64,000 bases of DNA from Macrostomum lignano (taxonomy: Eukaryota), in contig NIVC01001620.1 of assembly GCA_002269645.1 (NCBI GenBank), positions 195,461 through 259,460 of the forward strand. The letters run 5' to 3'. Made by a program: the position numbers and the translations under genes. Position 1 is the stretch's first letter; every line of letters begins with the position of its first letter. The notes under the pieces were generated by a model. That model did not search any database, was not told the origin of the DNA, and was given only the letters and a program-made list of their open reading frames with translations. Shown in pieces: positions 1 through 52,834 of the stretch.

Positions 1-900
1 CGCGGCAACAGCTACCTGCTGGTGATGCAGGACCAGTTCTCCAAGTTCCTGACCGCTACGCCGATGCCAGACCAGACTGCCAAGACCATCGCGGACGCTG
101 CAGTCAAGGTTTTCTCGCTGTTCGGAGTCCCATCGGTCATCCACTCGGATCAGGGCGCGAACTTCGAGAGCGAGCTGTTCCAGGAGACGCTGCGAGCGCT
201 GGGCATCAGGAAGACGCGCACATCGCCCTACCATCCGCAGGGAAACGGCCTTGTGGAGCGCGGCAACAAGTCGCTGTTGCAACTGCTGCGGCTGTTCACC
301 GAGAGTGAGTCCAGCTGGGAGGAGCAGCTGCCGCTGGTGGTCCTGTCCTACAACTCCAGGGTCCACAGCTCAACCAAGGTGACGCCGCTGACTGTGATGA
401 CCGGCCGCGACCCGCAGCTTCCACCACAGGTGCAGGCTAGCGAGCAGCAGTATGACATCGGCACCTACTCGGCGCTGCTGGAGCGTCGGTTGGCCCGCAT
501 CCGCGAGTTCGTTGAGGAAAACCTGGTGGCCGCCGGGCAGCAACAGAAGGCGGCGCACGACAAGAAGGCGTCGGACCTGCCGCAGTTTCCGCAAGGCACC
601 GAGGTGTTGCTCAGCATCGAAATGCGGCGATCGAAGCTGGCGCCGTACTGGGAGCCGGGCTGGACGGTACTCGAGCAGCGCGGCCACTCGGTGCGCATCC
701 GCCGCTCCTTCGGCATTCGGCCGGTCCGCTGGGTGCACGTGAACCGGCTGCGCAGGCGGCTCGCAGCCCAGGCCGATGCGGAGCAGCTCCGCGAGCAGCC
801 GGTGACCCACGAGGTCGCCCCGGAGTCGAGCCAGGCCGAGCGGTGGTACCCGGCCAGGGTGCGGCGTCCTCCGGACTACCTCGGTGTGAGCGCTGAGTGA
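1..900 (+). CDS. Retrotransposon Pol, integrase core and C-terminus (partial)
   Basis: Frame open upstream of the ORF-track Met (RGNSYLLVMQDQFSKF). rve motifs IHSDQGANFES and TSPYHPQGNGLVER (D..D..E catalytic triad), GPY/F-like KLAPYWEPGWTV, and C-terminal RVRRPPDYL typical of Gypsy integrases. Confidence 0.95.
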   Translation, partial: RGNSYLLVMQDQFSKFLTATPMPDQTAKTIADAAVKVFSLFGVPSVIHSDQGANFESELFQETLRALGIRKTRTSPYHPQGNGLVERGNKSLLQLLRLFTESESSWEEQLPLVVLSYNSRVHSSTKVTPLTVMTGRDPQLPPQVQASEQQYDIGTYSALLERRLARIREFVEENLVAAGQQQKAAHDKKASDLPQFPQGTEVLLSIEMRRSKLAPYWEPGWTVLEQRGHSVRIRRSFGIRPVRWVHVNRLRRRLAAQADAEQLREQPVTHEVAPESSQAERWYPARVRRPPDYLGVSAE

Positions 901-3513: not shown

Positions 3514-6500
3514 ATGGACACGTTTCAGTATGATACGGTCCACAGGCCGCCAGCAGGTAAGCGCGCATTTCTCTCCTCCTCCTCCGCCTCCTCCCCTTTT
3601 TATTGCGAAGCATAAATATCGGTCTTGAAGCCTTGAAAGAAATGCTGTCTTAGGCTAGCTATGGACGGAGACAATAAACTCTTTGTTGGCTTACCACTGA
3701 TTCAATTGCAGTGTCATTCGCTGCTTCTGGCATCGGGGTGCAGCAGCAGCAGCAGCAGCAGCTTCATGCTAACAGCTACACAACAATCGGAATGCCGCCA
3801 GTTCCCATGGATCAACAGCAGCAGCAGCAGCAGCAGCAGATGGACACCCAGATGTCGGACAGTCAGCAGCAGCTCTGCGGCATCTGCAGCGACCGCGCCA
3901 CCGGCAAGCATTACGGCGCCTACTCTTGCGACGGCTGCAAGGGCTTCTTCCGCCGGTCGGTTAGGAAAAGCCATCAGTACATCTGCCGGTTCAATAGGAA
4001 CTGCACGGTTGATAGGGACAAGCGGAACCAGTGCCGCTACTGCAGGCTGGACAAGTGCTTCAGGGCCGGCATGAGAAAGGAGGGTAAGCGCAGTAGTTCG
4101 TGTACTTGTAAAATGCCTTTCTACTGTATTGGTCTCTACAATATTTGCTACATTGTCTGGTACAGGAGGCGTACGGCAGTGCATTTTGTATTGTGGCCTG
4201 ACTTCGTGCGAATAGGAGACCCCTATAGCCAAGTGCTTAATCAGTGCTATGATACTGGAAGAGCTTACTGAAGACAAGTGCTTAATCAGTGCTATGATAC
4301 TGGAAGAGCTTACTGAAGACAAGTGCTTAATCAGTGCTATGATACTGGAAGAGCTTACTGAAGACAAGTGCTTAATCAGTGCTATGATACTGGAAGAGCT
4401 TACTGAAGACAATTGAGGCTTTGTGAAATGAAGACTGACAAATCATTAGAAACTCCGTTTCAATACAAAGTTTCTGAGTAAGGGTTGTTTAACTCGCTAT
4501 TCGTTTGATCTTACTCGCTTGTGCTTTTTATCTAATGCACTATCGGATTCAAAAAGATAAAAAGAGTAACTTCTGCTTCTTAGATTGCTGCCTATCATTG
4601 CTTGCAATCTAAGTTTTGAGGACTCTTTTAGTTTACTGAATTGTTTTGTTAAGTGGCAAGAAATCGGGCTGTTCAGAAGCAACCAAGGGGACTTGGAGTT
4701 CTAAAGGGATCTGGACGGGAAATAGAAGGGGTTCTAGAATAGGGGAACTGGGGTTCAATCCAATCGGATTTGAAATCTAGTCTAGTCTGCCGTAGTTCTA
4801 ATATAGTCTTAGTCTAGTTCTAATCTAGTCTAGTTTTTAATCTAGTCTAGTCTAGTCTAGTCTAGGCTAGTTCTAATCTAGTCCAGCATTGTCTACAGAC
4901 TGGATTTGACTGGAAATTCCGACTGCAAAGAGCCTGCAGGAAAACTTCCTACGGGAAATTCTCGTGCTCCCGCTTGGGAGGTCGGAAAGGTCGATGAACT
5001 TTAAAAGATTACTATTTTTCTATTACTATTACATTAAAGGAGTCCATAACTTTCACTATCGCTAAACACTACCTTAGCCGTTCAAAACGAACGCGACAAG
5101 ATCAGCTTCCGTAAGACGTCCTCCTACGATGACGGAGTTGCCGGAGGCGGCGGCGGCGGCGCCGCAGCTTCCGCCAACGCGGTTCCCTCCTCGGGAGGAG
5201 CGCTGAAAGCCGAGGTCCAGGAGTCGGTCGCCGCCGCCCCAGCCGCCTCGGCGCCGCTGCAGACAGCTTCCCAGCAGCAGCCGGACTTCAGCCTGAGCCG
5301 CATCGTGTCCGCCGAGGACCGGCACCAGCAGCGGCAGCTGCAGACCCAGCAGTCGGCCGCGGCAGTTCAAGTCGGTCGCCAGCAGGTCAGGAGCGAAGCC
5401 TCGGTCGCAACCATCTGCGACTCGATGCAGCACCAGCTGCTGCTGCTGGTGGAGTGGGCCAAATCGTTTCCCGCCTTTATCGAGCTCAACGTTGAGGAGC
5501 AGGTCGCCCTGCTGAGGGCGCACGCTGGCGAACTGCTCATCCTGGGTGTCACCTACAGATCCCGAGCTGAGACCGCTATGCTCATCCTTGGCAACTCGTT
5601 CCGCGTCAGTAGCAACAACCCGGACCTATCCATGGCCCAGGTTGCCGGCCGGGTTATCAACGAACTGGTGTCCCAATTCCGCGAGCTGGGGATCGACTTC
5701 ACCGAGTACGCCTGCCTCAAGGCTGTGGTCTTCTTTGACCCCGGTGAGCAGAGTAGATCCCGCCTCTATCCTAATCCCGCTTCCCGCCTCTATCCTAATC
5801 CCGCTTCCCGCCTCTATCCTAATCCCGCTTCCCGCCTCTATCCTAATCCCGCTTCCCGCCTCTATCCTAATCCCGCTTCCCTCCTCTATCCTAATCCCGC
5901 TTCCCGCCTCTATCCTAATCCCGCTTCCCTCCTCTATCCTAATCCCGCTTCCCGCCTCTATCCTAATCCCGCTTCCCGCCTCTATCAAAATCCCGCTTCC
6001 CTCCTCTATCCTAATCCCGCTTTCCACCCTTCCTGTCCCGCAGACGCGGTGCACCTGCCGCCCAGCGTGTCAACCCGAGTCCGTCGATGGCGACACTCGG
6101 TGCTGCAGCGAATGCAGGACTATATGAGCACCCAGCAGTACCGAAGCCGCAGCCGTTTCGGCGAACTGCTGCTGCTGCTGCCCAAGCTGCAGTCAATCAA
6201 TCATGAAATGATCCGCAAGGTCTACCGGACCAAGGTGGAGGGTCTCGCCCAGATCGACACCCTGCTGCAGGAGCTGCTTCTAGGAGGTGAGGCTGGATGC
6301 GGAGTCTGACTGTCTTGTGAGACATCAGCTTTGAAGTCTTATGCTTGATAGTTGATGGTGTGAATGAATTGGTAACTGTCTGTGTGAATGAATTGGTAAC
6401 TGTCTGTGTGAATTAATTGGTGACTATCTGTGTGAATGCATTAGTGAATGTCTGTGTGAATGCATTTGTGAATGTCTGTGTGAATGCATTTGTGAATGTC

Positions 6501-8340
6501 TGTGTGAATGCATTTGTGAATATCTGTGTAAATGAATTTGTGAATGTCTGTGTGAATGCATTTGTGAATGTCTGTGTGAATGCATTTGTGAATGTCTGTG
6601 TGAATGCATTTGTGAATGTCTGTGTGAATGCATTGGTGACTATCTGTGTGAATGCATTTGTGAATATCTGTGTAAATGAATTTGTGAATGTCTGTGTGAA
6701 TGCATTGGTGACTATCTGTGTGAATGCATTTGTGAATATCTGTGTAAATGAATTTGTGAATGTCTGTGTGAATGCATTTGTGAATGTCTGTGTGAATGCA
6801 TTTGTGAATGTCTGTGTAAATGCATTTTTGAATGTCTGTGTGAATGCATTTGTGAATGTCTGCATAAAGTCTCGTGCCTTAAAATTTTATAAACGAGTTA
6901 TTTAAAGATTCCGCACTCATACTTTAACACAGTTATTTAGTACAACACAAATTGTAATGGTTGCAATCAGACTTACTTTGCTTTAGCAAAACTTTGTTCG
7001 CGTGGCTGCGAGTGCGCCAGTACCCGGCGCTCCATCAAAGTGGCTTCTCCAGAGTCTGGGAAAGTCTGCTTGGGCCTTGATTATTATTCAGTCACTTCTC
7101 TTGACTTAGCGCAGCAACCGCTCGCGTTCACTTGGCTTCTGTGCGCGAGTACTTTGCTGTGTCTATTAGCTACTGACTTTACTACTGCTAGTAGGGAGCG
7201 CTACGGCTGTGTCTATTAGCTACTGACTTTACTACTGCTAGTAGGGAGCGCTACGGCTGTGTCTATTAGCTACTGACTTTACTACTGCTAGTAGGGAGCG
7301 CTACGGCTGTGTCTATTAGCGACTGACTTTACTACTGCTAGTAGGGAGCGCTACGGCTGTGTCTATTAGCTACTGACTTTACTACTGCTAGTAGGGAGCG
7401 CTACGGCTGTGTCTATTAGCGACTGACTTTACTACTGCTAGTAGGGAGCGCTACGGCTGTGTCTATTAGCTACTGACTTTACTACTGCTAGTAGGGAGCG
7501 CTACGGCTGTGTCTATTAGCGACTGACTTTACTACTGCTAGTAGGGAGCGCTACAGCTGTGTCTATTAGCGACTGACTTTACTACTGCTAGTAGGGAGCG
7601 CTACGGCTGTGTCTATTAGCGACTGACTTTACTACTGCTAGTAGGGAGCGCTACGGCTGTCTATTAGCGACTGACTTTACTACTGCTAGTAGGGAGTGCT
7701 ACGGCTGTGTCTATTAGCGACTGACTTTACTACTGCTAGTAGGGAGCGCTACAGCTGTGTCTATTAGCTACTGACTTTACTACTGCTAGTAGGGAGGAAA
7801 GGTTTGACTGCCATCTTTACATCTGTTGATGAACTCTTTGGCCCCACGGACCCCTGGTTCGATTCTGTGCGCGGTCGCAGCCATGATAGCCGACCCCCAG
7901 GGCACAGAGTGTACGACATGCCTGACGATTAGAAAGTCAGGGCCGCTGCACTCCCTGTGTGAGCGTGTGCATGAGTGCGTGAGTACGTGCTCAGGAGTCT
8001 GTGGAATGGGCAGAGTTGCCTTTACGGTGGTTGTTGTTGTAGTTTACGAGCTACTAAAGTTTTCCAGTGGGTTGCCATCCCCCCTCGCACCCCGCAGACA
8101 ACGCAGCGACCTCAGAAGCGGCCCAGCAGCCCATGGCTTCCTCCGGCGGCCAAATCAATGCTTCTAACACTGCTGATGACGGCTTCGATGACTCTGACAT
8201 CATGGCCCAGATGGAAGCGCAGGGGGTAATTCCCCAGCACTACCAGAACGGGACTGTTCAGGACACCTACGGAGGTCATTACGGTGTGTCAGTCATTACC
8301 GGATGTGCTAGCTAACTAACTGACTAACTAAGTAACTAAG

Positions 8341-12811: not shown

Positions 12812-13501
12812 CATCAAAGGAGGCGATCGCAGCCCCGTTGAACTCAAACGGCTGGCACCAACTGTCAAGTGAAGTCAGCGAAGGTCACCAAACTCGTATT
12901 TAGTTTAAATATTAGTCAGTAAAACGCAGTTTAAACTGTTTATTTGTTTTATTAACATAAGCCATTAACATTTTTTCCAAACAGGAATAATCTTGCAAAA
13001 TTCAGTGCATTGCGCAGTTGTTCACACCTTGACTTAATTACTCGGATCAATTAACTATCATTAGTAATAAAAATAGTTAGAGAGCTCAACAATTTACAAT
13101 TAAGGCCTCTCTGGAAATCAGTCAGTCAGATTTTATATTGCTGCAGCCGCAGCGGGTAAAATAAAAAATAAAGAGGCTTTGAAAACTAAAATCACTCACA
13201 CAAAAAAGCAGAGAAGGCACAACAAAAGAGCTTTGGTAAAACTGCCGAGAAAAAAACCAATTGAGCCAAAAAACACGAAGTGTTGTTCTCGCGTTTTTAT
13301 TTATCTGCGATTTTTCTTAATTTCAGCGATAGAAAATTTGACTGAAGAGAGAAAGAGTACAAAAATATTCGAGTTTTTAGTGCACTGTTTTCATAGAGAG
13401 AGAGAGAAGTTTTGAGACAACATTACTGTTAGGAGACAATGCCTTAGAAAGTAGACACAGAAAGCCAAGAGTCTCTGGGTTGTCGGTCTCGAACTCCCGG
13501 C

Positions 13502-16500
13502 TCAGGCAGCTTGCTCTGAAATTCAGCATCAAGTTTGCATTTGCGAATTCATCTCGGTAAAATGTGTCGTTTCCACTTCCCGCCCTTTAGACCGGCCATC
13601 TATTCCGCCCCTAAGATCCGCCCCCGATACTTCCTCAGAACCAACTTCCGCCCTTGCAATCCTCTCTCAGATCCGCTACCCAGATCTGCCTCTCAGATCC
13701 GTCCTTCAGATCCGCCCTTCAGACCTGCCGCTCCAATCCTCACTCAAATCCGCCCTTCAGCCCACCCTTCAGATCCGCCCTCAGAGCTGCCCTCAGATCC
13801 TCCCTCAGATCTGCCCCTCAGATCTGCCCCTCAGATCCGCCCTTCAGATCCGCCCCTCCAATCTCCAATCCTCTATCAGATCCGCCATTCAGATCCGCCC
13901 CTCCAATCCTCTATCAGATCCGCCATTCAGATCCGCCCCTCCAATCCTCTATCAGATCCGCCATTCAGATCCGCCCCTCCAATCCTCTATCAGATCCGCC
14001 CTTCCTTCAGATCTGATCTTCAGATCCGCCCTTCCTTCAGATCTGCTCTTCAGATCCGCCCTTCAGATCCGCTCCTCCAATCCTCTCTCAGATCCGCCCT
14101 TCAGATCCGCCCTTCAGATCCGCTCCTCCAATCCTCTCTCAAATCCGCCCTTCAGCCCACCCTTCAGATCCGCCCTCAGAGCTGCCCTCAGATCCTCCCT
14201 CAGATCTGCCCCTCAGATCTGCCCCTCAGATCCGCCCTTCAGATCCGCCCCTCCAATCTCCAATCCTCTATCAGATCCGCCATTCAGATCCGCCCCTCCA
14301 ATCCTCTATCAGATCCGCCATTCAGATCCGCCCCTCCAATCCTCTATCAGATCCGCCCTTCCTTCAGATCTGCTCTTCAGATCCGCCCTTCAGATCCGCT
14401 CCTCCAATCCTCTCTCAGATCCGCCCTTCAGATCCGCCCTTCAGATCCGCTCCTCCAATCCTCTCTCAGATCCGCCCTTCAGATCCGGCCTTCAGATCCG
14501 GCCTTCAGATCTGCCCACAGATCCGCCCCTCAGATCCGCCCTCAGATCCGCCCCCCAGATCCGCTCTCTGAACTCACGTTCCTCCGCGGCGGTCTCGCCG
14601 CCCTGAGCGGCGGCCTCTCCCTCGGCGGCCGGCGCCGGCGAAGCGGCATCTGGCGAGGCGTCACCGGCCGCCGGCGTCGCCGAAGCCTCGGATTGGTCTC
14701 CGGCCTCCGGCGCTGCCGCTGCCTCGTCCGCCGGCTTTTCTTCGCCCGCACCTTCGGCATTCTCGGCTGGCTGCGGCGTGGAACTACCGGCTGCGGCGGC
14801 GCCTGCCAGTTAAAAAAAGTGAACGGTCGTAATTAAATAGATTTCAAACTGGCCGGCTTCATCGCTTATTAAAATGTTTACCAGTCTCCCCGTTTGCCTC
14901 GGGGGCAGCGCCGTTCTCCTGCTTCTTGTCGGCGTTGTCGGCCGCGTTGGCCTGCTGCTGCTGCTGCTGCTGGCCCGCTGCCGGCTTGGAGGAGTTCGCG
15001 GCCGCGTTGCCGCTGGCCGCCGTCTGTCCGCCCGCCGGCTTATTGCCGTTCGCAACTGGATGGTGGGAAAGGGTGGGTGGGTTTTTATCGTTGCGGAAGT
15101 AAAGTTAGTCTGCTTGTAATGGCGGTGAGTCCCTCCTAACTCACTTCCCAACACGCATCCGCCCATCATCCGCCCATCATCCGCCCATCATCCGCCCCAT
15201 CGTCCGCTGTCTATCATCCGCCCATCATCCGCCCGTCAACCGCCCGTCAACCGCCCCATCATCCACTCTCTAACAACCGCTTCATTTATCCGCTCTCTAT
15301 CATCCGCCCCATCATCCGCCCATCAGCCGCCCCATTATCCGCCCCATCATCCGCCCCATCATCCGCTCTCCATCGTCCGCCTCATCATCTGTCTAATCAA
15401 CCAGTTATCAACCGCCCCATCACCTGCCCTAAAATATTCTTTGTTTGTCTTCAGTTCTCTATCATCCCTCATCCGCCCCCCCCCCATATCCGCCTCTCGT
15501 CAGGACTGTCTTTTTACAATCAGTTTAAACGGACCACCTGCGTCATTCAGCATCGTGGAAAAATTATAATGCGCAACTGAATTTTTTGTTATCGATGCCC
15601 TGTCGGATCTCCACCGCCTCCGCGTTGCTAGCCAAAATAGTCAGTTGAAACGGTGGGGGGGGGGGGTTATCGCATTTCCATTGTCCACCCCGCGGCCCTC
15701 ATGATTCCCAATTATCCATATCTGGTATGAGGAAGAGGGGAGGCGGGTTAGAGGGGATGGAACTTCCAGCCTCTTTAAAGCTGCGGCCCCCTGTCGCGTT
15801 GTTAGCCAAATGATTTCGCCGCGACCCTCTGTCTCTCTCTCTCTCTCTCTCTCGCTCTCTCTCTCTTCGCGTTTGTGTCCGGTAGCGAATGGGTTGGTGT
15901 GGATGGCTGGCGGGCTTGCCCACTAAAACAAACGAACGTTTAGTAAATACGTTGCCATGGTAACGCTGAGGACTGGGGGGGGGGGAAGAAGGAAATAGGA
16001 GAGTCGCCAGACGGGACAAGCTCTGTTTTCCATGCCCCAGTTCAACCCCCCCGGCTGCTGAAGTGTGCGGCAGGATTGTAGACGCCGACAAAAACAATTT
16101 TCCACCCCAATCCCCAGAGCGCTTCTACTAGAGGCAGGAGAGGGGAAGAGAGAGACGCCGGGTAGGGAAGGTAAAAAATGGCTCGCTGCGGTGTGAGTGG
16201 GGAATTGGGGAGTAAATAGATTCCCTATAGACCTGCCAGCTGCATTCTCTATTCCCTGTTCCCTGTTCCTACCCTGGTTGCCAGGGCCATGGACAGCTAA
16301 CTCTGTGGAGTTCTCAAGCGAGAGAAAGAGGAGAATGAGATGAGATTTCAATGCGATGTGGGCTTCCCCCCCCCTCGTTTCTCTATTTTTATTTTTGCAG
16401 CTGTTCGCTCCAACTCTGCACACGCTTAGCATTGGTTACCATGGCAACAGGTTTTTTACGAATACTATAGTCATTTCGCGTTTGCAGAGATTTGAAGGCC

Positions 16501-16832
16501 CCGTTTGACGATAACCGATGAAGAGAAAGGAGATTGGACATTTGAATGCTAAAATTCAATAATTTTGGTGTGCTGGGAAGATTTGAAGCATTTGTCTACT
16601 CAGAATCTTCGGATTGTGGGGTAGTAGCTAACGAAAAACCAGCATAGCTAGAAAACCAGCTGAAAGAGATGATGGCACTGAGGGCCTCAGTTCCATTCCT
16701 GACTTATGTTACGAGCATATACGTGACAATGATTTCGTTGATTACAATTGATTACATTCACAAGCTCTTTTATTAAAATACATGTACTTCGTTCTTACCC
16801 TGTTGCTGGCCTTTGCTGCTGTTGCAACCCAT
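13502..16832 (-). CDS. Orphan 148-aa intrinsically disordered Ala/Glu/Pro-rich protein with an N-terminal myristoylation/palmitoylation motif (MGCNSSK)
   Basis: Hand-spliced exons (minus strand) 16832-16799, 15055-14882, 14802-14578, 13515-13502; all GT-AG, all phase 1, 447 nt. Translation MGCNSSKGQQQVANGNKPAGGQTAASG...AENAEGAGEEKPADEAAAAPEAGDQ...GGETAAEEQQAA*. Exons 2-3 show GC-rich codon usage like the other genes. The last exon is the least certain. Confidence 0.82.
13610..14570. repeat. CAGATCCGCCC(C/T)T-type minisatellite in intron 3 of the MGCNSSK gene
   Basis: Repeating AGATCCGCCC core; source of the 433-aa QIRPSDP pseudo-ORF. Confidence 0.93.
15160..15425. repeat. CATCCGCCC(C) degenerate repeat
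   Basis: Repeated ATCATCCGCCC motifs in intron 1 of the MGCNSSK gene. Confidence 0.85.
15951..15964. promoter_or_regulatory. RFX X-box (GTTGCCATGGTAAC)
   Basis: Exact match to the established X-box consensus GTNRCC-N0-3-RGYAAC; one mismatch to the palindrome GTTGCCATGGCAAC. Confidence 0.7.
16435..16448. promoter_or_regulatory. RFX X-box (GTTACCATGGCAAC)
   Basis: Exact reverse complement of the site at 15951; matches the X-box consensus. Confidence 0.7.
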
Positions 16833-17174
16833 GCCGATATGTCAATCAGTTGGTTTTCCTGTCCTGTCGACTGTGTGTACACACGAAAGCGAAACCCGGT
16901 CAAGACTTTGTTATTTAACCGGCTTAAGGGAAGTCGAACTGCTTCTAGTCAAGAAAAAATCGATTTCTATAAGCTGGGGTAGAAGAACTATAATTTCAAA
17001 GCAAGCAAGATTAGAAGAGACTGGCGGCAGCTGCTGCAGAAGCAGAAGTGAGGACAAAGGAGGGACTGGCAAAGACAATGGGGCCGAGGCGAGGCGGGAG
17101 GTCTCTCTTGAGGGGGGGGGGGGCTGGCGACAGCATTTTTATTTGCACCCCAGGTTTTGCTTCAGGATATGCTC

Positions 17175-17188
17175 GTTGGCATGGCAAC
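17175..17188. promoter_or_regulatory. RFX X-box-like site (GTTGGCATGGCAAC)
   Basis: One mismatch to the X-box palindrome; about 340 nt upstream of the MGCNSSK ATG. Confidence 0.6.
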
Positions 17189-19010: not shown

Positions 19011-35382
<16,372 letters not shown>

Positions 35383-35654: not shown

Positions 35655-37811
35655 ATGCAACGCGCGATTCGATACTTTGCTCTGATTGCCATGAGCTGGC
35701 TTGGTAATTGATTAACTATTGTTTTGTAACTTTTATAGTGAAATAGCATATATATGAGTATTGCTTTTTAGCCAGAGACTTATTAGCATATATGATGGGT
35801 ATTAAACCGTGAGCCACTGTCAAGGTTGAACAATGTGTTTCCTTAAAGTTACCTTTTTCTACATTAAACCATAATAAATAGCACTATTATAGTAATAAGT
35901 AACAAAAATTAAGACAGACTGTCCACCTATTAGAGTAGGGTGTCCACCTTTAGGGGTAAGGGTGTCCACCTTTAGGGGTAAGTGTGTCCACCTTTAGGGG
36001 TAAGGGTGTCCACCTTTAGGGGTAAGGGTGTCCACCTTTAGGGGTAAGGGTGTCCACCTTTAGGGGTAAGGGTGTCCACCTTTAGGGGTAAGGGTGTCCA
36101 CCTTTAGGGGTAAGGATGTCCACCTGTAGAGGTAAGGTGTCCACCTGTAGGGATAGAGTGTCCAGTGTCCACCTGTAGGGATAGGGTGTCCACCTGTAGG
36201 GATAGGCTGTCCACTTGTAAGGGTAAGGGTGTCCACCTGTAGGGATAGAGTGTCCACCTGTAGGGATAGGCCGTCCACCTGTAGGGATAGGGTGTCCACC
36301 TGTAGGGATAGGGTGTCCACCTGTAGGGGTAAGGGTGTCCATCTGTAGGGATAGGCTGTCCACCTGTAGGGATAGGGTGTCCACCTGTAGGGATAGGGTG
36401 TCCACCTGTAGGGGTAAGGGTGTCCATCTGTAGGGATAGGCTGTCCACCTGTAGGGATAGGGTGTCCACCTGTAGGGATAGGTTGTCTACCTGTAGGGGT
36501 AAGGGTGTCCATCTGTAGGGATAGGGTGTCCACCTGTAGGGATAGGGTGTCCACCTGTAGGGGTAGGTTGTCTACCTGTAGAGATAGTGTGTCCACCTGT
36601 AGGGATAGGGTGTCCAGGATAGGTTGTCCACCTGTAGAGATAGGGTGTCCATCTGTTAGAGTAGGGTGTCCACCTGTAAGGATAGGGTGTCCACCTGTGG
36701 AATAGGGTGTCTGCCTGCAAGGATAAGAGCGTCCACTAAAAGAGGGACTAAGTAGACACCACTAAAAGCTACGAGTCCAGTGGTACTTGAGAATAGGGTG
36801 TCCATGTGTAGGGAAATAGCCGAGATTGTCCCAGATTGACAGGTTCTGATAGCCAGAGCACATTGTTCAACCCTGAAGCCCATAGGATAAATTGAACAAT
36901 CGCCAGGATGAGAAGACCCGCTTCGAATCCCTTCGCCCGCAGGCCTCATTTCGCTGCCAACCGTAGACGCAGCCAAAAGGCCGAGGCCGACTCCCACGAC
37001 CGTCCCGATGCGCAAGCTGTGCCTGGAGCACGGCGGCGCCGACTGGATCTTCACCAAGAGCTTCTCCATAGGCGAGATGCTGCATTATTGCGAGACCCTG
37101 GCTGGCAACACGGCTACGCTGCAGCGAGTCGCCGAGCAGTGGCCGAGCATCTCCGACCAGCGCGGCGCCTGCTACAATCCTGACAGTTGGACTTTCCAGC
37201 CAGGCGCCTACAGCTTCCTGTTGCGAGCTATATTCCGTCATCATATCGATGTCAACCTGGACGGCAAGATGAGCTGGCGAGAGATGCGGCTCTACCTGGA
37301 GCCGGCGCTGCGCTACCGCCTGCTTCCGGGCCTCCTGGATGACGAATACCGCAGCCTGCTGGACGCTCACTTCCGCGGCTCTCGAACGCCCCGGATGCCG
37401 ATTAGCGAAGCGGAGTTCGTGTCGGCCGCGCTGCGGATGCTTCGAGCCGAGTGGCCGCTGCTGGTGAAGCGGACCATCCCGGATCTGGACGGCGACAACT
37501 GCGTGACCAGGGCGGAGTTCGCCAGGGCCGACTGTCGGCGCAGGATCAAGGAGGTGGACCTGTACTTCCGGGTGGCCGATCTGGACGGCAATCGGGCCGT
37601 GACGGGGCCGGAGCTGATGCACTTCCGGGACACGGTGCAGCCGCAACCGGGCGAGGAGAGCGGCGCGCAGGCGTTTAATGCGTTCTTCGGCGCAGTGCAG
37701 GGCATGATCGACAGCTACAAGGAGGACTATTATCATAAGACGTCGTACGCGCACGATCAGATGATCACGTTCAACGAGATCAATTTGTACATCTGCGATC
37801 GAGTCATTTAA
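35655..37811 (+). CDS. Secreted multi-EF-hand Ca-binding protein, about 305 aa, 2 exons
   Basis: Exon 1 35655-35703 (MQRAIRYFALIAMSWL, donor GTAATT) splices in phase 1 to exon 2 36943-37811 (GLISLPTVDA-AKRP...), giving a signal-peptide-like N-terminus. EF loops DVNLDGKMSWRE, DLDGDNCVTRAE and DLDGNRAVTGPE; 6 Cys; no KDEL/HDEL. Confidence 0.82.
35930..36725. repeat. 21-bp G-rich minisatellite (GGGTGTCCACCTGTAGGGATA; TTAGGGGTAA variant at the 5' end)
   Basis: Tandem array in intron 1 of the EF-hand gene. Confidence 0.95.
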
Positions 37812-40973: not shown

Positions 40974-42771
40974 ATATATACTATAGTTAGGAAGGTGACA
41001 CTGTCACACATAATTTTTAGATGACTATTGAGATAAAGTAGTAGTAGTATGCTTTAGAAAGCATATAGACTATATTCTACAAAATAAATGAAATTTCTAT
41101 GGGACTATGCACCTAGGCACCAAAAAAGCTAATAGGTCTACATTGCAGATTGGCTCAAAAAGAAGACAAATGCATATAGAAGCAAAAAAGGTAATAAACT
41201 AGGTTGCTCATTTTAGCTTTTAATAGGCCTATTAAAAATCTAAATTCTTAAAATTGACTCACATTATGCCATTTTATGGCATTATTTTACCCAAGTTTAA
41301 AGTATTATTAATTACTAAGGTATTACAATTTAAAGAAAAGCTACAAGATAGATATGCTTCCCTCCTAAACTTTTAATTAAATGATAAGAGAAATAAAAAT
41401 CAGATAGAATATAAATTAAAATTTGAATTAAAATAGGCTGATAAGCAAGTAAAATAACATAAAAAAATTATTATTTTTTTCTTTAAAATTTTGTTATACT
41501 ATTTTAATTTTAACAAATACAAATACATAAGTTTATTATTATTGAAATGCTTAATGACTTATAAAAATAAAGCTGATATAAATATGTCTACTTTTATAAC
41601 CATCATTTTCCTAATTAATTGCCATATTAATATATATATATTTCTTGTTTAATCTTCTAATTTCTATTTATTTATCATGTTATATTAGGGTTATACAAAA
41701 ATATTTGATAAAATAAATTGTTTTTCATTTGTTTTTTATTTATATTTTTTATAATGTTACTAAAATCATTATGTAAATATTTGCAATTATTTCAATAGAA
41801 TTTTTTTTGGTTGCTAGGTTAATAGCTCAATAAAGATCAGTTTCTATTTTTATATTTAAATTATAATTTAAATAAAAATATTCTATTCTATTCTATTTCT
41901 GTTCTATTCTATTTCTTAAATATTAATATTCTAAATACTTTTTTTATAATGTTTTTATTAAAAAATCTTATTTTATACTATCTTTAGTTTTTTAATTTTA
42001 ATAGGGGCTTATATACCAAAAGGAGAGGTTTGAGTTTGCAATATTATCAACAAGTTTCTTAGGCCTAGTATTCAATCTATCAGTAATTCTTAATTTCTAA
42101 GCTAGCTAGGATCTTATGTAATAGCTATTATACATATTCTAGATTTCTTTGAATGGTTAAAGTATAGTGTCACTTTTGTATCAACTAGGTTGCCAAATTA
42201 TAAAAATCATTGAATGAAAGCTGGCATCAACCAAAAAGTTCAAAATAAAATAAAATATTAGCATCTTTATTCCATTCCTTTACATTGCTAAGCCTTTGGC
42301 ACATAGAATGTACTGAAAGCTTCAAAGTCAATTTTTAACAAATTATTTAATTTTTATAATTGAAAAAGCTCATTCAGTCAAAAGAACCACTATAATTATA
42401 AAATTAGTGATTTATTCTACATAAAATAATTTTAGAACTTTAAATTTAATTAAATTAAATAATTAAAATATCCCAATTATATATTATGTAATAATATTGC
42501 TACATACTATGACAAAGAAATAAAACCTAGCATATATTCAATCATCTTTCAACTGCCAGTATATAACTATTGTCATTTTATGATACTTTGCTAATCTTTA
42601 GTAGGGTACTCATGATTTTCAGTCTATTGTATAGATCATTTTACATTTTTACATACATTTCAGCACTCTTCCCTGGCATCAGTGTGGAGAGGATTGCTAA
42701 GTGTGGACCTGGGACCCTGAGCTAAACAGATCCTAAGAGTGCAGTTTGGCACCCAGCCAACCCTTAGACCC

Positions 42772-44806
42772 ATGGACTGGCTTGTTCGCGAAGTGAGCGT
42801 CAGTTTCACTGGCAACCGCTATCCCGTTCACATTGGCTGGCTCATTGTTCAAGTGCTATGCGCCTCCTTATTCTGGCTATTCATGTACGCCGCCCTGTGC
42901 CTCTCCATGCCTAGATTCCGCTGCGAGTGGCACTGCCGCATTGTCACTGCAGTCCACGCCCTGATTGTGTCCGCTCTGGCCTTTCTGGACGTCTTCATTA
43001 TTGGCAGAATCCCGTTCTATCATAAGAATCAAGGTGAGGGATGTCAGGATCTAGGCCAGGGCCTGTTAGACATACTCGTTCGAATATCTGTTTCACTTGT
43101 TACTCCTTATTATGCAATCTTACTAAGGTGTTTAGTGAAAATTTTCAGATGTATTAGTAAAAGGTAAAAGCTTCAATAATAATAATAACAATAATTGATT
43201 ACAGATGCTCAGCCGCAGCTATTGCGCTGCGCATCTGAAGGCTGTGTACGGCTGTTCAGTCCAAGGACGGGGAGGGGGTCGCCACACACCCTCAATTACC
43301 CCAGCTAATGCTTGCACCCCATTTTACAGCTGGGTGAACTGAAGCAAAGCAGAGTTAAGTGTCTTGCTCAAGGACACAAATTGTTCCGAGTGGGGCAAGA
43401 ATCGAACCCTCGACCTTTCAGACATAAGTCTGACGCTCCAACCACTAGGCTGCAACCCCTCAAAAAGCTTTTAAATACATTTTAGGATTCTCTAAGTTTA
43501 GATAGTGAGCAGTATTTAGTTATGAATCTATTTAAAATCATTAATTTGCTGAATCATTCCACCATTAATCTTGTAGTCCTGCCTTACACGGAACTGGAAA
43601 GGCTAATATTCACGGCCAGCCTCGGCTATTTTATATTCGACATCTCCTGGTGCCTGTACTATCAAACTGAGGGCCCCTTCATGCTGTTCCATCACGCTAT
43701 GAGCATTCTGGGCCTGGCCGGCACCCTGCTGATGGGCAAATGCGGCGCTGAGATGGCCGCCACTGTTGGTGGGACGGAGGTCACCAATCCAGTGCTGCAG
43801 TTGCGATGGTTCCTGCGGGAACAGGTGGGTTTTGCTTGCTCAGCTTTTATTGCTGCTTGGCATTTTTGTGTGTCTGTATGGGGATTCCATTGTGTCTGTA
43901 TGGAGTTTTGTTTGATTATTCCATTGTGTCTGTATAGAGTTTTGTTTGGGGATTCCATTGTGTCTGAATGGGGATTCCATTGTGTCTGTATGGGGATTCC
44001 ATTGTGTCTGTATGGGGTTTTGTTTGGGGATTCCATTGTGTCTGTATGGGGTTTTGTTTGGGGATTCCATTGTGATTTGTGTCTGTATGGGGTTTTGTTT
44101 GGGGATTCCATTGTGTCTGTATGGGGTTTTGTTTGGGGATTCCATTGTGTCTGTAGGAGGCTCGGTTTGGGGATTCCATTGTGGCTCGGTTTGGGAATCC
44201 ATAGTTTCTATTTTTAGCTTTCTGTTTGTGACCGTGGTTTGAGACTCCACTGTTACTATATTTACTTTGGGGATCCACTATTTCTAGTATTAATTGGGTA
44301 TGTGCGAGCATTAAAAGTACATTGAGTGTACTCTAGAATCGAGCTCACAATTTGCTATAACTCGCTGGCAGGGCTTCACCGGCACCAGGCTGATGATGGG
44401 AGTTGAGGTGCTGTTCATGGTCAGCTTCGGAGTGATGCGCCTGCTGTTGGGCGGCGCTCTCATAATCTCATATTTTACCAATCCGCACACCGAACTGCTT
44501 GGCCGGCTGGCTGCTGTAGTGATCTACGGCATCGGCGTGATTTTCTACGCCCAGCTGTGCAGCTACTGCATGCACAGATTCCGCAGGCGCGCCCCAATTG
44601 TCGTCGCTTCAAATGGCACCGCCCATCATCATTTGGCGCAGTCGGTCTCGGATAGCTCGCTGGTGGCTGCCAGCCCAGCTGGCGGAGCCGGCGACAGTCC
44701 CATAGTGTCGCCAGCTGGAGTGGCAACTGTTCTGTCCTTCTCGGCTTCGTCTGGCGATTTAAATCGAGCATTGGACACTGCCGGCTCGAGTAGGAAGCAG
44801 CATTAG
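42772..44806 (+). CDS. TLCD5: TLC-domain membrane protein TLCD5/TMEM136, about 314 aa, 3 exons
   Basis: Exons 42772-43033, 43577-43824, 44372-44806; GT-AG, 945 nt. Motifs EWHCRIVTAVHA, SLGYFIFDISWCLYYQTEGPFMLFHHAMS and GTEVTNPVLQLRWFLRE match TMEM136/TLCD5. Confidence 0.9.
43174..43460 (-). mobile_element. tRNA-derived CORE-type (MIR-like) SINE in TLCD5 intron 1
   Basis: Minus strand has A-box CAGCCTAGTGGT (43452-43441), B-box GGTTCGATTC (43408-43399), the CORE-like segment GTGTCCTTGAGCAAGACACTTAAC...CACCCAGCTGTAAAATGGGG and a (TAT)n tail. Candidate TSD AAAAGCTT at 43166-43173 and 43463-43470. Confidence 0.8.
43865..44200. repeat. About 20-34 bp minisatellite (GGGGATTCCATTGTGTCTGTATGGGGTTTTGTTT) in TLCD5 intron 2
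   Basis: Tandem periodicity. Confidence 0.92.
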
Positions 44807-46155: not shown

Positions 46156-47068
46156 ACTTGGTAGTCTAATCTAAGTACCTTGAAACCTGTACTACAACTT
46201 GATGGCTGGCATCACACATTTAATTTAGCGGTTATTTTTATTACCTTTTGAGCATATGACTTGCTTGCTACTCGTTAGTAGTTTTGACGCATATTTGTAG
46301 CCCGATATTTTTAGCCCTGACGACCAATCTTCTTACAGCTTGCCTGCGCCCAGCAATTGTTGGACGGTATTTTGTTGTCTCAAACTTATGTTTGAACTCA
46401 ATACTTTAGTTAGTAATTTTTACTAATTAATTTTTAGCGTTACTGCACAATTGCTTTGCTGTCTTGAACTCAATGAATACGAGCGGGTACATAGTGATAT
46501 GGTTATCAGTACATCTATTTTTCTAGGTTTGAGCTGAAATCCGTCCCGTTTTAAAGTTTTAGAATGATAGTAAGAATGCAAAAATTATCATTTTCTCTTA
46601 TTGCTACTGATTTCATTTGAGCCAGTAGTATGATTTGCTTTTCTTAAAATGATTTTAATTCGTTTTTTTCACCTTGATATTTATGTCGGTTTTCTTTATT
46701 TTCTCATGTGCTCTGCTGTGTTGACTAAATGCCTTTAAAGCGATATTTTTCTGACTGTTTGCTCTGTTTTGCACTGAACTTACACCAGGAGCCTTAATAC
46801 AGATATCGATTTTTAATTTGCACCTTTTCAGCTTTATCTTTTTGTCATGTAAAAAAAGTTTTTTCACGTCTACGTGGCCAGGCCCAGTGTCGGTTTATTT
46901 GTCTCAATTGTTGCTTTGTAGTTCGCGTAAATGTACATTCGGTTCTTCTCCTGACTGGCTTGTTGATTTTTCTGCTGCAGCTGACTTTTGCATTGACTTT
47001 TTCATTTGTTAGACCGGCCTTAAGGAGCTGTCCCTGATGCCTGACCCCTGACTCTTGTTGGCCCTGAA

Positions 47069-50000
47069 CTGTCCCAATCCGTGTACCACATCCCTCCAGA
47101 CTGTCCCAATTTGTGTCCCATCCCTCCAGACTGTCCCAATTTGTGTCCCACATCCCTCCAGACTGTCTCAACCCGTGTCCCATCCCTCCAGACTGTCCCA
47201 ATTTGTGTCCCACATCCCTCCAGACTGTCCCAATTTGTGTCCCACATCCCTCCAGACTGTCCCAATCCGTGTACCACATCCCTCCAGACTGTCCCAATTC
47301 GTGTCCCACATCCCTCCAGACTGTCCCAATTCGTGTCCCACATCCCTCCAGACTGTCCCAATTTGTGTCCCACATCCCTCCAGACTGTCCCAATTTGTGT
47401 CCCATCCCTCCAGACTGTCCCAATTTGTGTCCCACATCCCTCCAGACTGTCCCAATTTGTGTCCTACATCCCTCCAGACTGTCCCAATTTGTGTCCCACA
47501 TCCCTCCAGACTGTCCCAATCCGTGTCCCACATCCCTCCAGACTGTCCCAATTTGTGTCCCACATCCCTCCAGACTGTCCCAATTTGTGTCCCACATCCC
47601 TCCAGACTGTCCCAATTTGTGTCCCACATCCCTCCAGACTGTCCCAATCCGTGTCCCACATCCCTCCAGACTGTCCCAATTTGTGTCCCACATCCCTCCA
47701 GACTGTCCCAACCCGTGTCCCACATCCCTCCAGACTGTCCCAATTTGTGTCCCATCCCTCCAGACTGTCCCAATTTGTGTCCCACATCCCTCCAGACTGT
47801 CCCAATTTGTGTCCTACATCCCTCCAGACTGTCCCAATTTGTGTCCCACATCCCTCCAGACTGTCCCAATTCGTGTCCCACATCCCTCCAGACTGTCCCA
47901 ATTCGTGTCCCACATCCCTCCAGACTGTCCCAATTTGTGTCCCACATCCCTCCAGACTGTCCCAATTCGTGTCCCACATCCCTCCAGACTGTCCCAATTC
48001 GTGTCCCACATCCCTCCAGACTGTCCCAATTCGTGTCCCACATCCCTCCAGACTGTCCCAATTTGTGTCCCACATCCCTCCAGACTGTCCCAATTTGTGT
48101 CCCACATCCCTCCAGACTGTCCCAATTTGTGTCCCACATCCCTCCAGACTGTCCCAATTTGTGTCCTACATCCCTCCAGACTGTCCCAATTTGTGTCCCA
48201 CATCCCTCCAGACTGTCCCAATCCGTGTCCCACATCCCTCCAGACTGTCCCAATTCGTGTCCCACATCCCTCCAGACTGTCCCAATTCGTGTCCCACATC
48301 CCTCCAGACTGTCCCAATCCGTGTCCCACATCCCTCCAGACTGTCCCAATCCGTGTCCCACATCCCTCCAGACTGTCCCAATCCGTGTCCCACATCCCTC
48401 CAGACTGTCCCAATTTGTGTCCCACATCCCTCCAGACTGTCCCAATTTGTGTCCCACATCCCTCCAGACTGTCCCAATTTGTGTCCCACATCCCTCCAGA
48501 CTGTCCCAATTTGTGTCCCACATCCCTCCAGACTGTCCCAATTTGTGTCCTACATCCCTCCAGACTGTCCCAATTTGTGTCCCACATCCCTCCAGACTGT
48601 CCCAATTTGTGTCCCACATCCCTCCAGACTGTCCCAATTTGTGTCCCACATCCCTCCAGACTGTCCCAATTCGTGTCCCACATCCCTCCAGACTGTCCCA
48701 ATTTGTGTCCCACATCCCTCCAGACTGTCCCAATTTGTGTCCCACATCCCTCCAGACTGTCCCAATTTGTGTCCCACATCCCTCCAGACTGTCCCAATTT
48801 GTGTCCTACATCCCTCCAGACTGTCCCAATTTGTGTCCCACATCCCTCCAGACTGTCCCAATTTGTGTCCCACATCCCTCCAGACTGTCCCAATTTGTGT
48901 CCCACATCCCTCCAGACTGTCCCAATTTGTGTCCCACATCCCTCCAGACTGTCCCAATTTGTGTCCCACATCCCTCCAGACTGTCCCAATTTGTGTCCCA
49001 CATCCCTCCAGACTGTCCCAATTTGTGTCCCACATCCCTCCAGACTGTCCCAATTCGTGTCCCACATCCCTCCAGACTGTCCCAATTTGTGTCCCACATC
49101 CCTCCAGACTGTCCCAATTTGTGTCCCACATCCCTCCAGACTGTCCCAATTTGTGTCCCACATCCCTCCAGACTGTCCCAATTTGTGTCCCACATCCCTC
49201 CAGACTGTCCCAATTTGTGTCCCACATCCCTCCAGACTGTCCCAATTCGTGTCCCACATCCCTCCAGACTGTCCCAATTTGTGTCCCACATCCCTCCAGA
49301 CTGTCCCAATCCGTGTCCCACATCCCTCCAGACTGTCCCAATTTGTGTCCCACATCCCTCCAGACTGTCCCAATCCGTGTCCCACATCCCTCCAGACTGT
49401 CCCAATTTGTGTCCCACATCCCTCCAGACTGTCCCAATTTGTGTCCCACATCCCTCCAGACTGTCCCAATTCGTGTCCCACATCTCTCCAGACTGTCTCA
49501 ACCCGTGTCCCACATCCCTCCAGACTGTCCCAATCCGTATTCCACATCCCTCCAGACTGTCCCAACCCGTGTCGTCCCACATCTCTCCAGACTGTCCCAA
49601 TTCGTGTCCCACATCCCTCCAGACTGTCCCAACCCGTGTCCCACATCCCTCCAGACTGTCCCAATTCGTGTCCCACATCCCTCCAGACTGTCCCAATTCG
49701 TGTCCCACATCCCTCCAGACTGTCCCAACCCGTGTCGTCCAACATCTCTCCAGACTGTTCCAACCCGTGTCCCACATCTCTCCAGACTGTCCCAACCCGT
49801 TTCCCACATCTCTCCAGACTGTTCCAACCCGTGTCCCACATCTCTCCAGACTGTTCCAACCCGTGTCCCACATCTCTCCAGACTGTTCCAACCAGTGTCC
49901 CACATCTCTCCAGACTGTTCCAACCAGTGTCCCACATCTCTCCAGCTTGTTCCAACCCGTGTCCCACATCTCTCCAGACTGTTCCAACCCGTGTCCCACA

Positions 50001-52248
50001 TCTCTCCAGACTGTCCCAACCCGTTTCCCACATCCCTCCAGACTGTCCCAACCCGTTTCCCACATCTCTCCAGACTGTTCCAACCCTTGTCCCACATCCC
50101 TCCAGACTGTCCCAACCCGTGTCCCACATCTCTCCAGACTGTCCCAACCCGTTTCCCACATCTCTCCAGACTGTTCCAACCCGTGTCCCACATCTCTCCA
50201 GACTGTTCCAACCCGTGTCCCACATCTCTCCAGACTGTCCCAATTCGTGTCCCACATCTCTCCAGACTGTTCCAATTTGTGTCCCACATCCCTCCAGACT
50301 GTCCCAATTCGTGTCCCACATCCCTCCAGACTGTCCCAATTTGTGTCCCACATCCCTCCAGACTGTCCCAATTTGTGTCCTACATCCCTCCAGACTGTCC
50401 CAATTTGTGTCCCACATCCCTCCAGACTGTCCCAATTTGTGTCCCACATCCCTCCAGACTGTCCCAATTTGTGTCCCACATCCCTCCAGACTGTCCCAAT
50501 TTGTGTCCCACATCCCTCCAGACTGTCCCAATTTGTGTCCCACATCCCTCCAGACTGTCCCAATTTGTGTCCCACATCCCTCCAGACTGTCCCAATTTGT
50601 GTCCCACATCCCTCCAGACTGTCCCAATTCGTGTCCCACATCCCTCCAGACTGTCCCAATTTGTGTCCCACATCCCTCCAGACTGTCCCAATTTGTGTCC
50701 CACATCCCTCCAGACTGTCCCAATTTGTGTCCCACATCCCTCCAGACTGTCCCAATTTGTGTCCCACATCCCTCCAGACTGTCCCAATTTGTGTCCCACA
50801 TCCCTCCAGACTGTCCCAATTCGTGTCCCACATCCCTCCAGACTGTCCCAATTTGTGTCCCACATCCCTCCAGACTGTCCCAATCCGTGTCCCACATCCC
50901 TCCAGACTGTCCCAATTTGTGTCCCACATCCCTCCAGACTGTCCCAATCCGTGTCCCACATCCCTCCAGACTGTCCCAATTTGTGTCCCACATCCCTCCA
51001 GACTGTCCCAATTTGTGTCCCACATCCCTCCAGACTGTCCCAATTCGTGTCCCACATCTCTCCAGACTGTCTCAACCCGTGTCCCACATCCCTCCAGACT
51101 GTCCCAATCCGTATTCCACATCCCTCCAGACTGTCCCAACCCGTGTCGTCCCACATCTCTCCAGACTGTCCCAATTCGTGTCCCACATCCCTCCAGACTG
51201 TCCCAACCCGTGTCCCACATCCCTCCAGACTGTCCCAATTCGTGTCCCACATCCCTCCAGACTGTCCCAATTCGTGTCCCACATCCCTCCAGACTGTCCC
51301 AACCCGTGTCGTCCAACATCTCTCCAGACTGTTCCAACCCGTGTCCCACATCTCTCCAGACTGTCCCAACCCGTTTCCCACATCTCTCCAGACTGTTCCA
51401 ACCCGTGTCCCACATCTCTCCAGACTGTTCCAACCCGTGTCCCACATCTCTCCAGACTGTTCCAACCAGTGTCCCACATCTCTCCAGACTGTTCCAACCA
51501 GTGTCCCACAACTCTCCAGCTTGTTCCAACCCGTGTCCCACATCTCTCCAGACTGTTCCAACCCGTGTCCCACATCTCTCCAGACTGTCCCAACCCGTTT
51601 CCCACATCCCTCCAGACTGTCCCAACCCGTTTCCCACATCTCTCCAGACTGTTCCAACCCTTGTCCCACATCCCTCCAGACTGTTCCAACCCGTGTCCCA
51701 CATCTCTCCAGACTGTCCCAACCCGTTTCCCACATCTCTCCAGACTGTTCCAACCCGTGTCCCACATCTCTCCAGACTGTTCCAACCCGTGTCCCACATC
51801 TCTCCAGACTGTCCCAATTCGTGTCCCACATCTCTCCAGACTGTTCCAACCCGTGTCCCACATCTCTCCAGACTGTCCCAATTCGTGTCCCACATCTCTC
51901 CAGACTGTTCCAACCCGTGTCCCACATCTCTCCAGACTGTCCCAATTCGTGTCCCACATCTCTCCAGACTGTTCCAACCCGTGTCCCACATCTCTCCAGA
52001 CTGTCCCAATTCGTGTCCCACATCTCTCCAGACTGTTCCAACCCGTGTCCCACATCTCTCCAGACTGTCCCAATTCGTGTCCCACATCTCTCCAGACTGT
52101 TCCAACCCGTGTCCCACATCTCTCCAGACTGTTCCAACCCGTGTCCCACATCTCTCCAGACTGTCCCAACCCGTGTCCCACATCCCTCCAGACTGTTCAA
52201 CCCGTGTCCCACATCTCTCCAGACTGTCCCAACCCGTGTCCCACATCC
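47069..52248. repeat. 32-bp satellite (CCACATCCCTCCAGACTGTCCCAATTTGTGTC), about 160 copies, with a 1574-bp higher-order duplication
   Basis: Tandem periodicity; the unit has no stop codon in any of the six frames, which explains the 1700-aa pseudo-ORFs. Confidence 0.98.
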
Positions 52249-52834
52249 CTTATTATTTTGCACTGTTTTGTCAGTAGGCCAGTGTGTTCTGTTCTGCCGG
52301 CTTAAGTTGTCATTATTTCAAGTTTCACGTTTGTTCAATACTGTAGAATTTTCTAAACAAATTTCTATATGAAAACCGTGCCTGAATAAACAAAACTATT
52401 TCGAGTTTCCTGTCTTCGTTCCACACGGCGTTGTCTTTCCTAATTTCTTGGCTTTTTATCTGACAACTCGGTCTCGAAATATCTAGACCTAGACTGAGCA
52501 GTAAGCAGAATGTCTCCATGTCCTAACTTAGTGTCATACTTTAGCCATTGCGGTCTAATCTACATTACTTTTTAGTGTGAATGCACATGAGAATGACAAA
52601 AATCGATATTGATACACCCGCCGCAGGTGTTGCCACCGTGTACTTTCGGTGGCTAGCATTTTGTTTGACTTTATTCGGTTTTGATAAGTCTAATCTAAAT
52701 TTAATCTCTTAGGTGTAAAGCAAAGCAAAATTGTACGTGTGATCGTACTTGGTCTCTGTGCATTGAACTTCGAATGATCCACCTTACTCACACAGCTAAC
52801 CCTACCGAACACATTCCTGACTTACTACTGTTCG

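Follow-up and report, generated by a model that had tools for sequence, protein, structure and literature searches.

The X-box and the RFX half-site GTTRCY are conserved from fungi to animals and cluster where ciliary genes start (bioRxiv 10.1101/2022.11.11.515474). Degenerate X-boxes have no predictive value in Drosophila, where palindromic ones are over-represented among true RFX targets (PMC2375033), and a few genes bear several X-boxes, which tune their expression (PMC3245922, PMC4168999). An X-box form composed of one good and one relaxed half has been reported in real targets (PMC4168999). On the side of the gene products, dual acylation at Gly2 and Cys3 is required for localisation of calflagin, CePPEF and RP2 to the cilium or flagellum (PMC6678300), and an RFX isoform acts upstream of CIL-7, a myristoylated protein of the cilium (PMC6678300; bioRxiv 10.1101/2021.02.03.429678). 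No RFX target in Macrostomum or other flatworms was found in the literature. Here, we describe a 64,000-nucleotide stretch of the Macrostomum lignano genome (assembly GCA_002269645.1, contig NIVC01001620.1, positions 195,461 to 259,460; hereafter the window), in which three X-boxes cluster around the 5' part of a small predicted gene on the minus strand, whose product would begin with MGCNSSK (the MGC gene). The chances are evenly balanced that the 1.6 kb between two minisatellites at approximately 15.6-17.2 kb acts as an RFX-responsive regulatory region of this gene.

Results

The X-box cluster is not a chance occurrence

Sites were judged against the strict X-box consensus GTNRCC-N2-RGYAAC and, for membership of the class, against GTNRCC N0-3 RGYAAC or two inverted GTTRCY half-sites. 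A preliminary description of the window had reported three near-perfect X-boxes at 15951, 16435 and 17175, and all three 14-mers are present at these positions. In the consensus scan, X-boxes 1 and 2 matched the strict form on either strand, while X-box 3 combines a perfect half GTTGCC on the minus strand with a half GTTGGC that has a mismatch at a conserved position, and so fails the strict consensus. Site 2 was also described as the exact reverse complement of site 1. The two are indeed perfect inverted copies, but little is gained from this, since an X-box of this kind nearly equals its own reverse complement.

The 64 kb contain no sites other than these three that differ from the palindrome GTTGCCATGGCAAC by at most one base, in agreement with the earlier statement that nothing comparable occurs elsewhere in the window. 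The base frequencies of the window predict 0.0087 one-mismatch X-boxes per 64 kb, close to the rate of about 0.01 given before, with a Poisson P(>=3) of ~1e-7, and no such site appeared in any of 100 dinucleotide-preserving shuffles of the window; three X-boxes within 1.24 kb are therefore not attributable to chance. In the whole 764 Mb genome, approximately 104 one-mismatch X-boxes are expected by chance. The preliminary description named the placement of the motifs in a high-copy repeat as one of the findings that would speak against it. This was checked inside the 64-kb window, where the resemblance between the copies ends at the motif edges (14-17 nt) and no longer repeat carrying the sites was found. 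The only other X-box-like site in the window, GTTTCTATGGCAAC at 54088-54101, codes for GFYGN within the A20 zinc finger of a RABGEF1/Rabex-5-like gene with A20 and VPS9 domains; given this coding position, it was rejected as a regulatory X-box and is probably incidental.

Weaker elements accompany the cluster. A second motif noted previously, the 16-mer CGCGTTG(C/T)TAGCCAAA, was recovered in both of its copies (15621 and 15795), against 0.03 expected at <=2 mismatches. The first copy holds the half-site GTTGCT and the second GTTGTT, one base off the RFX half-site, and the two are read as putative weak X-box-like elements rather than as a separate motif. Altogether, the 1.6 kb contains 8 GTTRCY half-sites, where the remainder of the window would predict 2.05 (about four-fold, P ~0.001); the half-site at 16802 is part of the coding sequence of exon 1 and probably there by coincidence. 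The G/C homopolymers of >=8 nt are likewise concentrated, with five of the window's eight located in 15476-17123 (1.65 kb; ~0.2 expected), each of the five 10-60 nt away from an X-box or 16-mer; nucleosome exclusion and slippage of the polymerase at hot spots are possibilities for their role. The X-box region contains no structured RNA or tRNA that could be found and no CpG island, the CpG observed/expected ratio being 0.68 there and 0.64 in the window.

The X-boxes lie at and inside the 5' end of a predicted gene for a putative lipid-anchored protein

The MGCxxS exon proposed in the preliminary description could be identified as a minus-strand exon encoding MGCNSSKGQQQ, with Gly2, Cys3 and Ser6 in place, the best phase-1 donor of the region and a reading frame continuing into two downstream exons (Table 1). 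It opens with ATGGGTTGC at 16832 (minus strand) in the favourable start context ATCGGCATGG, and its strong donor AGG/GTAAGA has the top score among all ATG-initiated phase-1 mini-exons in 15.06-17.7 kb. Intron 1 is 1,743 nt long and the intron between exons 2 and 3 has 79 nt; every junction from exon 1 to exon 3 is in phase 1, with a single frame throughout. Exons 2 and 3 are both rich in GC at third codon positions (GC3), and the values of exon 2 at codon positions 1/2/3 (0.70/0.54/0.89) follow the pattern of the neighbouring genes (GC3 0.75-0.86). Read-through past exon 3 leads to a stop at 14495, where the protein may end, and AATAAA signals lie 3' of exon 3 at 13301 and 12953. A further 3' exon was sought in 9.4-14.5 kb, where the minus strand has no GC3-rich open segment and no convincing candidate.

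Two alternative first exons, MMGGCVLG/gtgagt (15169-15145, minus strand) and MGGGRMRDD... (15487-15424), were rejected, as each has a weaker donor and a poorer myristoylation context than the MGC exon. The former is in phase with exon 2, 89 nt to its 5' side, and borders on the minisatellite at 15156-15389; both are possible products of an internal promoter.

The model product has 144 residues with a pI of 4.05, consists of 31% Ala, 12.5% Gly, 10% Gln and 10% Glu, and contains only 2 residues of the hydrophobic set V/I/L/M/F/W/Y. By prediction, it is an acidic, disordered chain behind a Gly2/Cys3/Ser6 N-terminus. The start MGCNSSK (G2, C3, S5, S6, K7) satisfies the dual-acylation signal MGCxxS/T, therefore N-myristoylation on Gly2 and palmitoylation on Cys3 are predicted, and a disordered, acidic, alanine-rich chain with such a lipid anchor would behave as a peripheral membrane protein.

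The cluster had been placed around exon 1. Of its members, only X-box 3 lies upstream of the ATG; intron 1 contains X-boxes 2 and 1 (at +384 and +868 from the ATG) as well as the two 16-mers. In the direction of the gene, the same order of elements comes after X-box 3 and after X-box 2: 30-40 nt, AAATAAAAAT, 10-11 nt, and a G:C homopolymer of 9-12 nt. The element AAATAAAAAT occurs 5 times in the 64-kb window. Because the arrangement is repeated at the two X-boxes, it suggests two tandem RFX-plus-TATA promoter modules, one with a putative start near 17105 and the other with an internal start near 16355. The TATA-like element at 17135 would set the former start at 17105-17110, and an internal promoter at X-box 2 would yield a transcript without the lipid anchor.

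Table 1. Features of the X-box region, the MGC gene model and the upstream gene (window coordinates; a slash marks a splice junction)
Feature	Position	Strand	Description
X-box 1, GTTGCCATGGTAAC	15951..15964	both	strict consensus; intron 1
X-box 2, GTTACCATGGCAAC	16435..16448	both	strict consensus; intron 1
X-box 3, GTTGGCATGGCAAC	17175..17188		one perfect and one relaxed half-site; 343-356 nt 5' of the MGC-exon ATG, promoter-proximal
TATA-like AAATAAAAAT	17135..17144	-	30 nt 3' of X-box 3 on the gene's strand; ~300 nt 5' of ATG
G:C homopolymer, 12 nt	17112..17123		adjoins the TATA-like element at 17135
Second AAATAAAAAT	16385..16394	-	~40 nt 3' of X-box 2 on the gene's strand
G:C homopolymer, 9 nt	16366..16374		adjoins the second TATA-like element
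Exon 1, coding part	16799..16832	-	ATG GGT TGC AAC AGC AGC AAA GGC CAG CAA CAG G, then gtaaga; MGCNSSKGQQQ; phase 1
Exon 2	14882..15055	-	phase 1 to phase 1; acceptor ccatccag/TT at 15056; encodes VANGNKPAGGQTAASGNAAANSSKPAAGQQQQQQQANAADNADKKQENGAAPEANGETG
Exon 3	14578..14802	-	acceptor ctggcag/GC, donor GAAC/gtgagt; Ala/Pro/Glu-rich
16-mer CGCGTTGCTAGCCAAA	15621..15636	+	half-site GTTGCT and degenerate second half; 18 nt later G12 run 15655-15666
16-mer CGCGTTGTTAGCCAAA	15795..15810	+	GTTGTT and degenerate second half; then (CT)n tract 15827-15870
Isolated perfect RFX half-site GTTGCC	16277..16282	+	inside GTTGCCAGGGCCAT
Forkhead-like GTAAATA	15943		adjoins X-box 1
Forkhead-like GTTTGTTT	15926	-	adjoins X-box 1
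G11 run	15975-15985		flanks X-box 1
F-box/LRR gene	19822..28061	-	F-box exon within 24590-24895; LRR exons 23863-24315 and 19822-20760; 5' limit uncertain

The upstream neighbour

On the 5' side of the MGC gene, and in the same orientation, there is a gene encoding an F-box and leucine-rich repeats (LRR), as the preliminary description had it for its motile-cilia neighbour. This gene has a polyadenylation signal AATAAA at 19757 and ends ~2.5 kb 5' of X-box 3. Pfam recognises the F-box (E 6.9e-5) and LRR_6 (E 3.8e-18), with more LRR exons in addition, and the order of an F-box followed by many LRR_6-type repeats corresponds to the FBXL13/DRC6-type architecture. Among solved structures, FBXL2 matched best (E 1.6e-41, in repeat-wise stretches) and no chain of FBXL13 was hit; the N-terminal exon had no match in the PDB search, and the protein search returned only LRR proteins at 28-35% identity. 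Its identity as FBXL13/DRC6 is a plausible lead. The 28.0-30.8 kb interval 5' of the first exon that can be recognised in this gene contains degenerate matches to the X-box and no good one, with a half-site at 30943 just outside.

The introns of the F-box/LRR gene are filled by kilobase minisatellites (20760-21753, 22052-23931, 26050-27721). With no counterpart among the proteins retrieved, the gene appears to be unannotated in the available M. lignano proteomes, and a metagenome scan with an F-box/LRR exon gave no match. The minisatellites in the introns are probably the reason why this gene, and possibly also the MGC gene, is missing from the available annotated proteins.

Other genes and repeats of the window

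The window is very dense in minisatellites, in a genome of which 15% consists of simple and tandem repeats (PMC5730564), and GC3 is 0.75-0.89 in most exons. An HNF4 gene (3711-8315, plus strand) is 98-100% identical to Macrostomum lignano UniRef HNF4 entries, which assigns the window to this free-living flatworm, in keeping with its dense minisatellites, its GC3 and the short intron of 79 nt; a paralogue of this HNF4 with 79% identity is carried by a duplicated block of the genome. A 24-nt minisatellite at 5758-6022 lies in frame inside a 334-codon open reading frame (ORF) of the HNF4 gene, and the annotated protein splices this array out. The integrase core domain (rve) of a long terminal repeat (LTR) retrotransposon with a GC3 of 0.87 is cut by the window edge at 1-900 (plus strand). 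Three further plus-strand genes encode a protein with DnaJ-type CxxCxGxG cysteine repeats and no Pfam match (31370-32741), which we take to be SSUH2-like, an EF-hand protein (37008-37811), and a TLC-domain membrane protein (42739-44806); no X-box was found near any of them.

A 5.2 kb array at 47068-52250 is built of a 32-nt unit in ~162 copies with 94% matches, and all three plus frames are open for >1,700 codons; these long ORFs were rejected as a gene, being a mechanical artefact of the 32-nt repeat. On the minus strand at 58929-63890, long ORFs (577, 175, 386 and 492 aa) follow each other almost without a break and include a C-terminal VWD domain, which points to a large lipid-transfer protein of the vitellogenin/apolipophorin/APOB-like kind. 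Its GC3 (0.52-0.62) is below that of the other genes of the window, and there may be a relationship to the APOB gene that serves as gut promoter in M. lignano transgenics.

Discussion

From the arrangement of the locus, the following course of events is proposed. An RFX dimer would bind the promoter-proximal X-box 3, 30 nt 5' of the TATA-like AAATAAAAAT, and also the stronger palindromic X-boxes of intron 1, which would act as intronic enhancers; X-box 2, with its own AAATAAAAAT and homopolymer, could alternatively belong to a second, internal promoter. The degenerate sites at 15621, 15795 and 16277 may offer extra low-affinity RFX half-sites, and the flanking G:C homopolymers possibly exclude nucleosomes from the region. 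The product, with myristoyl on Gly2 and palmitoyl on Cys3, would be made as a peripheral membrane protein in RFX-positive (ciliated) cells. RFX occupancy of the cluster is probable, because the RFX motif is conserved between fungi and animals, palindromic X-boxes are over-represented in true targets, and genes with multiple X-boxes are known. Since the X-boxes sit at and inside the 5' end of the MGC gene, this gene is their likeliest target, and the balance tips slightly in favour of its being controlled by RFX overall. The MGC locus is a reasonable but unproven candidate for a cilium-related gene.

Several observations weigh against this interpretation. The sole site 5' of the ATG is X-box 3, which is also the weakest of the three, and its distance of -343 exceeds that usual in well-studied RFX targets. 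Forkhead co-motifs are not enriched (2.2 per kb in the region vs 2.8 per kb in the window), forkhead-like sites being present as single ones beside X-box 1. Three frames are open across exon 3 of the gene model, splice phase alone sets the one chosen, and the modelled 3' end is provisional. The product has no homologue by word-indexed search, no match among 1.84 billion representative proteins searched exhaustively with HMMER and no family in Pfam at E <= 10. Low complexity can be dismissed as the cause of the empty homology search, as a control copy diverged by 50% reaches E 1e-18 (a copy >=50% identical would score E <= 1e-18). Nor does any annotated protein in the searched collection match the MGC gene model, but this speaks only weakly against the gene, because the clearly real F-box/LRR neighbour is missing as well and the stretch seems poorly annotated.

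Of the other explanations, the one that survives best accepts RFX regulation and removes the cilium: the product would be an acylated disordered protein of the cell cortex or plasma membrane, of the BASP1/GAP-43/HASPB-like kind, in neurons or other differentiated RFX-positive cells. We consider this unlikely, even if the composition and N-terminus of the product fit it and the product has no recognisable ciliary targeting motif, with AAEGE in place of AxEGG. Dual acylation is insufficient for ciliary entry and also found on proteins of the plasma membrane, Src-family kinases among them (PMC6678300), and RFX proteins have non-ciliary targets, controlling genes of many other processes (PMC3493443). 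For these two reasons, the position of the MGC protein on the ciliary membrane is doubtful and is put forward as a fair hypothesis, not as a conclusion. Against a non-ciliary role, strong palindromic promoter X-boxes mostly mark ciliated-cell genes in the invertebrates studied so far (PMC2375033, PMC1794439), and N-terminal dual lipidation can itself send proteins into primary cilia, according to a passage in PMC6678300 citing Kumeta 2018.

It is more improbable that the X-boxes serve the F-box/LRR gene, maybe the motile-cilium gene FBXL13/DRC6, as a downstream enhancer, or serve both genes, with the MGC transcript being minor or non-coding. The short distance from the end of that gene to X-box 3, the lack of a good X-box in its own upstream sequence, and the orphan status of the MGC gene, which has neither annotation nor homologue, would agree with such a scheme. 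However, RFX sites usually work near start sites (bioRxiv 10.1101/2022.11.11.515474) and M. lignano regulatory elements seem to be proximal (PMC5730564), while the sites in question are at and within the 5' end of the MGC gene with the TATA-like elements oriented toward it, and the FBXL13 orthology of the neighbour is only putative. Least probable is that the X-boxes have no regulatory function and are remnants of a local duplication or of a mobile or dispersed element, such as one with 14-nt inverted termini 484 bp apart (15951 and 16448), as the perfect inversion of sites 1 and 2, the more than half repetitive genome with its simple and tandem repeats (PMC5730564), the minisatellites packing the window and the co-clustering of G/C homopolymers with the X-boxes might suggest: any near-palindrome is automatically its own inverted repeat, the third site and the extra half-sites have just the RFX core in common, and the reading of sites 1 and 2 as the ends of a miniature inverted-repeat transposable element was rejected within the window, since the arms stop at 14 nt, exactly with the motif, target-site duplications are lacking and the 64 kb contain no further copy.

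Returning to the RFX-regulated MGC gene, a more far-reaching model can be drawn, which we regard as a long shot. A lineage-specific, dually acylated, acidic disordered protein would line the ciliary membrane on its inner face in the multiciliated epidermis or of sensory cells, and the two RFX-plus-TATA modules would give rise to anchored and anchorless isoforms, the choice of RFX site deciding on membrane binding. The epidermis of M. lignano is multiciliated.

If RFX control of the MGC gene proves true, it would be the first described RFX target in a flatworm, with the first dissected RFX-responsive promoter. In M. lignano, transgenesis is established and 2 kb of upstream sequence suffice for tissue-specific expression (PMC5730564). 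With stable transgenesis, the X-boxes can be mutated singly in vivo, which makes the prediction directly testable. A confirmed promoter would provide the M. lignano toolkit with a compact (<2 kb) ciliated-cell promoter, and a taxon-restricted, lipid-anchored disordered protein missed by homology-based ciliome searches would join the cilium-associated set.

Comparison with known systems

Vertebrate BASP1/NAP-22 and Leishmania HASPB combine an N-terminal acyl anchor with an acidic, Ala/Pro/Glu-rich hydrophilic chain and are not cilium-specific. They resemble the MGC product, with its almost complete lack of hydrophobic residues, in composition and anchor only. Unlike BASP1, it does not match the BASP1 Pfam family even at E <= 10 and has no basic effector patch after the anchor. 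With calflagin/FCaBP, CePPEF and RP2, which carry myristoyl on Gly2 and palmitoyl on Cys3, it shares the Gly2/Cys3/Ser6 arrangement, and with cystin, which like CIL-7 is only myristoylated, the small size and apparent lack of structure. It shows no sequence similarity to calflagin, CePPEF, RP2, cystin or CIL-7 and lacks EF-hand, phosphatase and TBCC domains as well as the AxEGG motif, and its acylation is a prediction. By sequence, the MGC product belongs to none of the calflagin, cystin, CIL-7, BASP1 and HASPB groups.

At the level of regulation, the closest parallels are the RFX/DAF-19 targets with multiple X-boxes, i.e., C. elegans F25B4.2, the cwp-4 doublet and the vertebrate HEATR2/DNAAF5 promoters, which like the MGC locus have >=2 X-boxes per gene. 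These targets typically combine one canonical and one relaxed site near the 5' end, which are thought to tune both the level and the place of expression (PMC3245922, PMC4168999, bioRxiv 10.1101/2021.02.03.429678). The MGC locus, where the motifs are known from sequence alone, departs from them in the number and position of its sites, with three near-perfect and three degenerate sites spread over 1.6 kb and the best two located in an intron.

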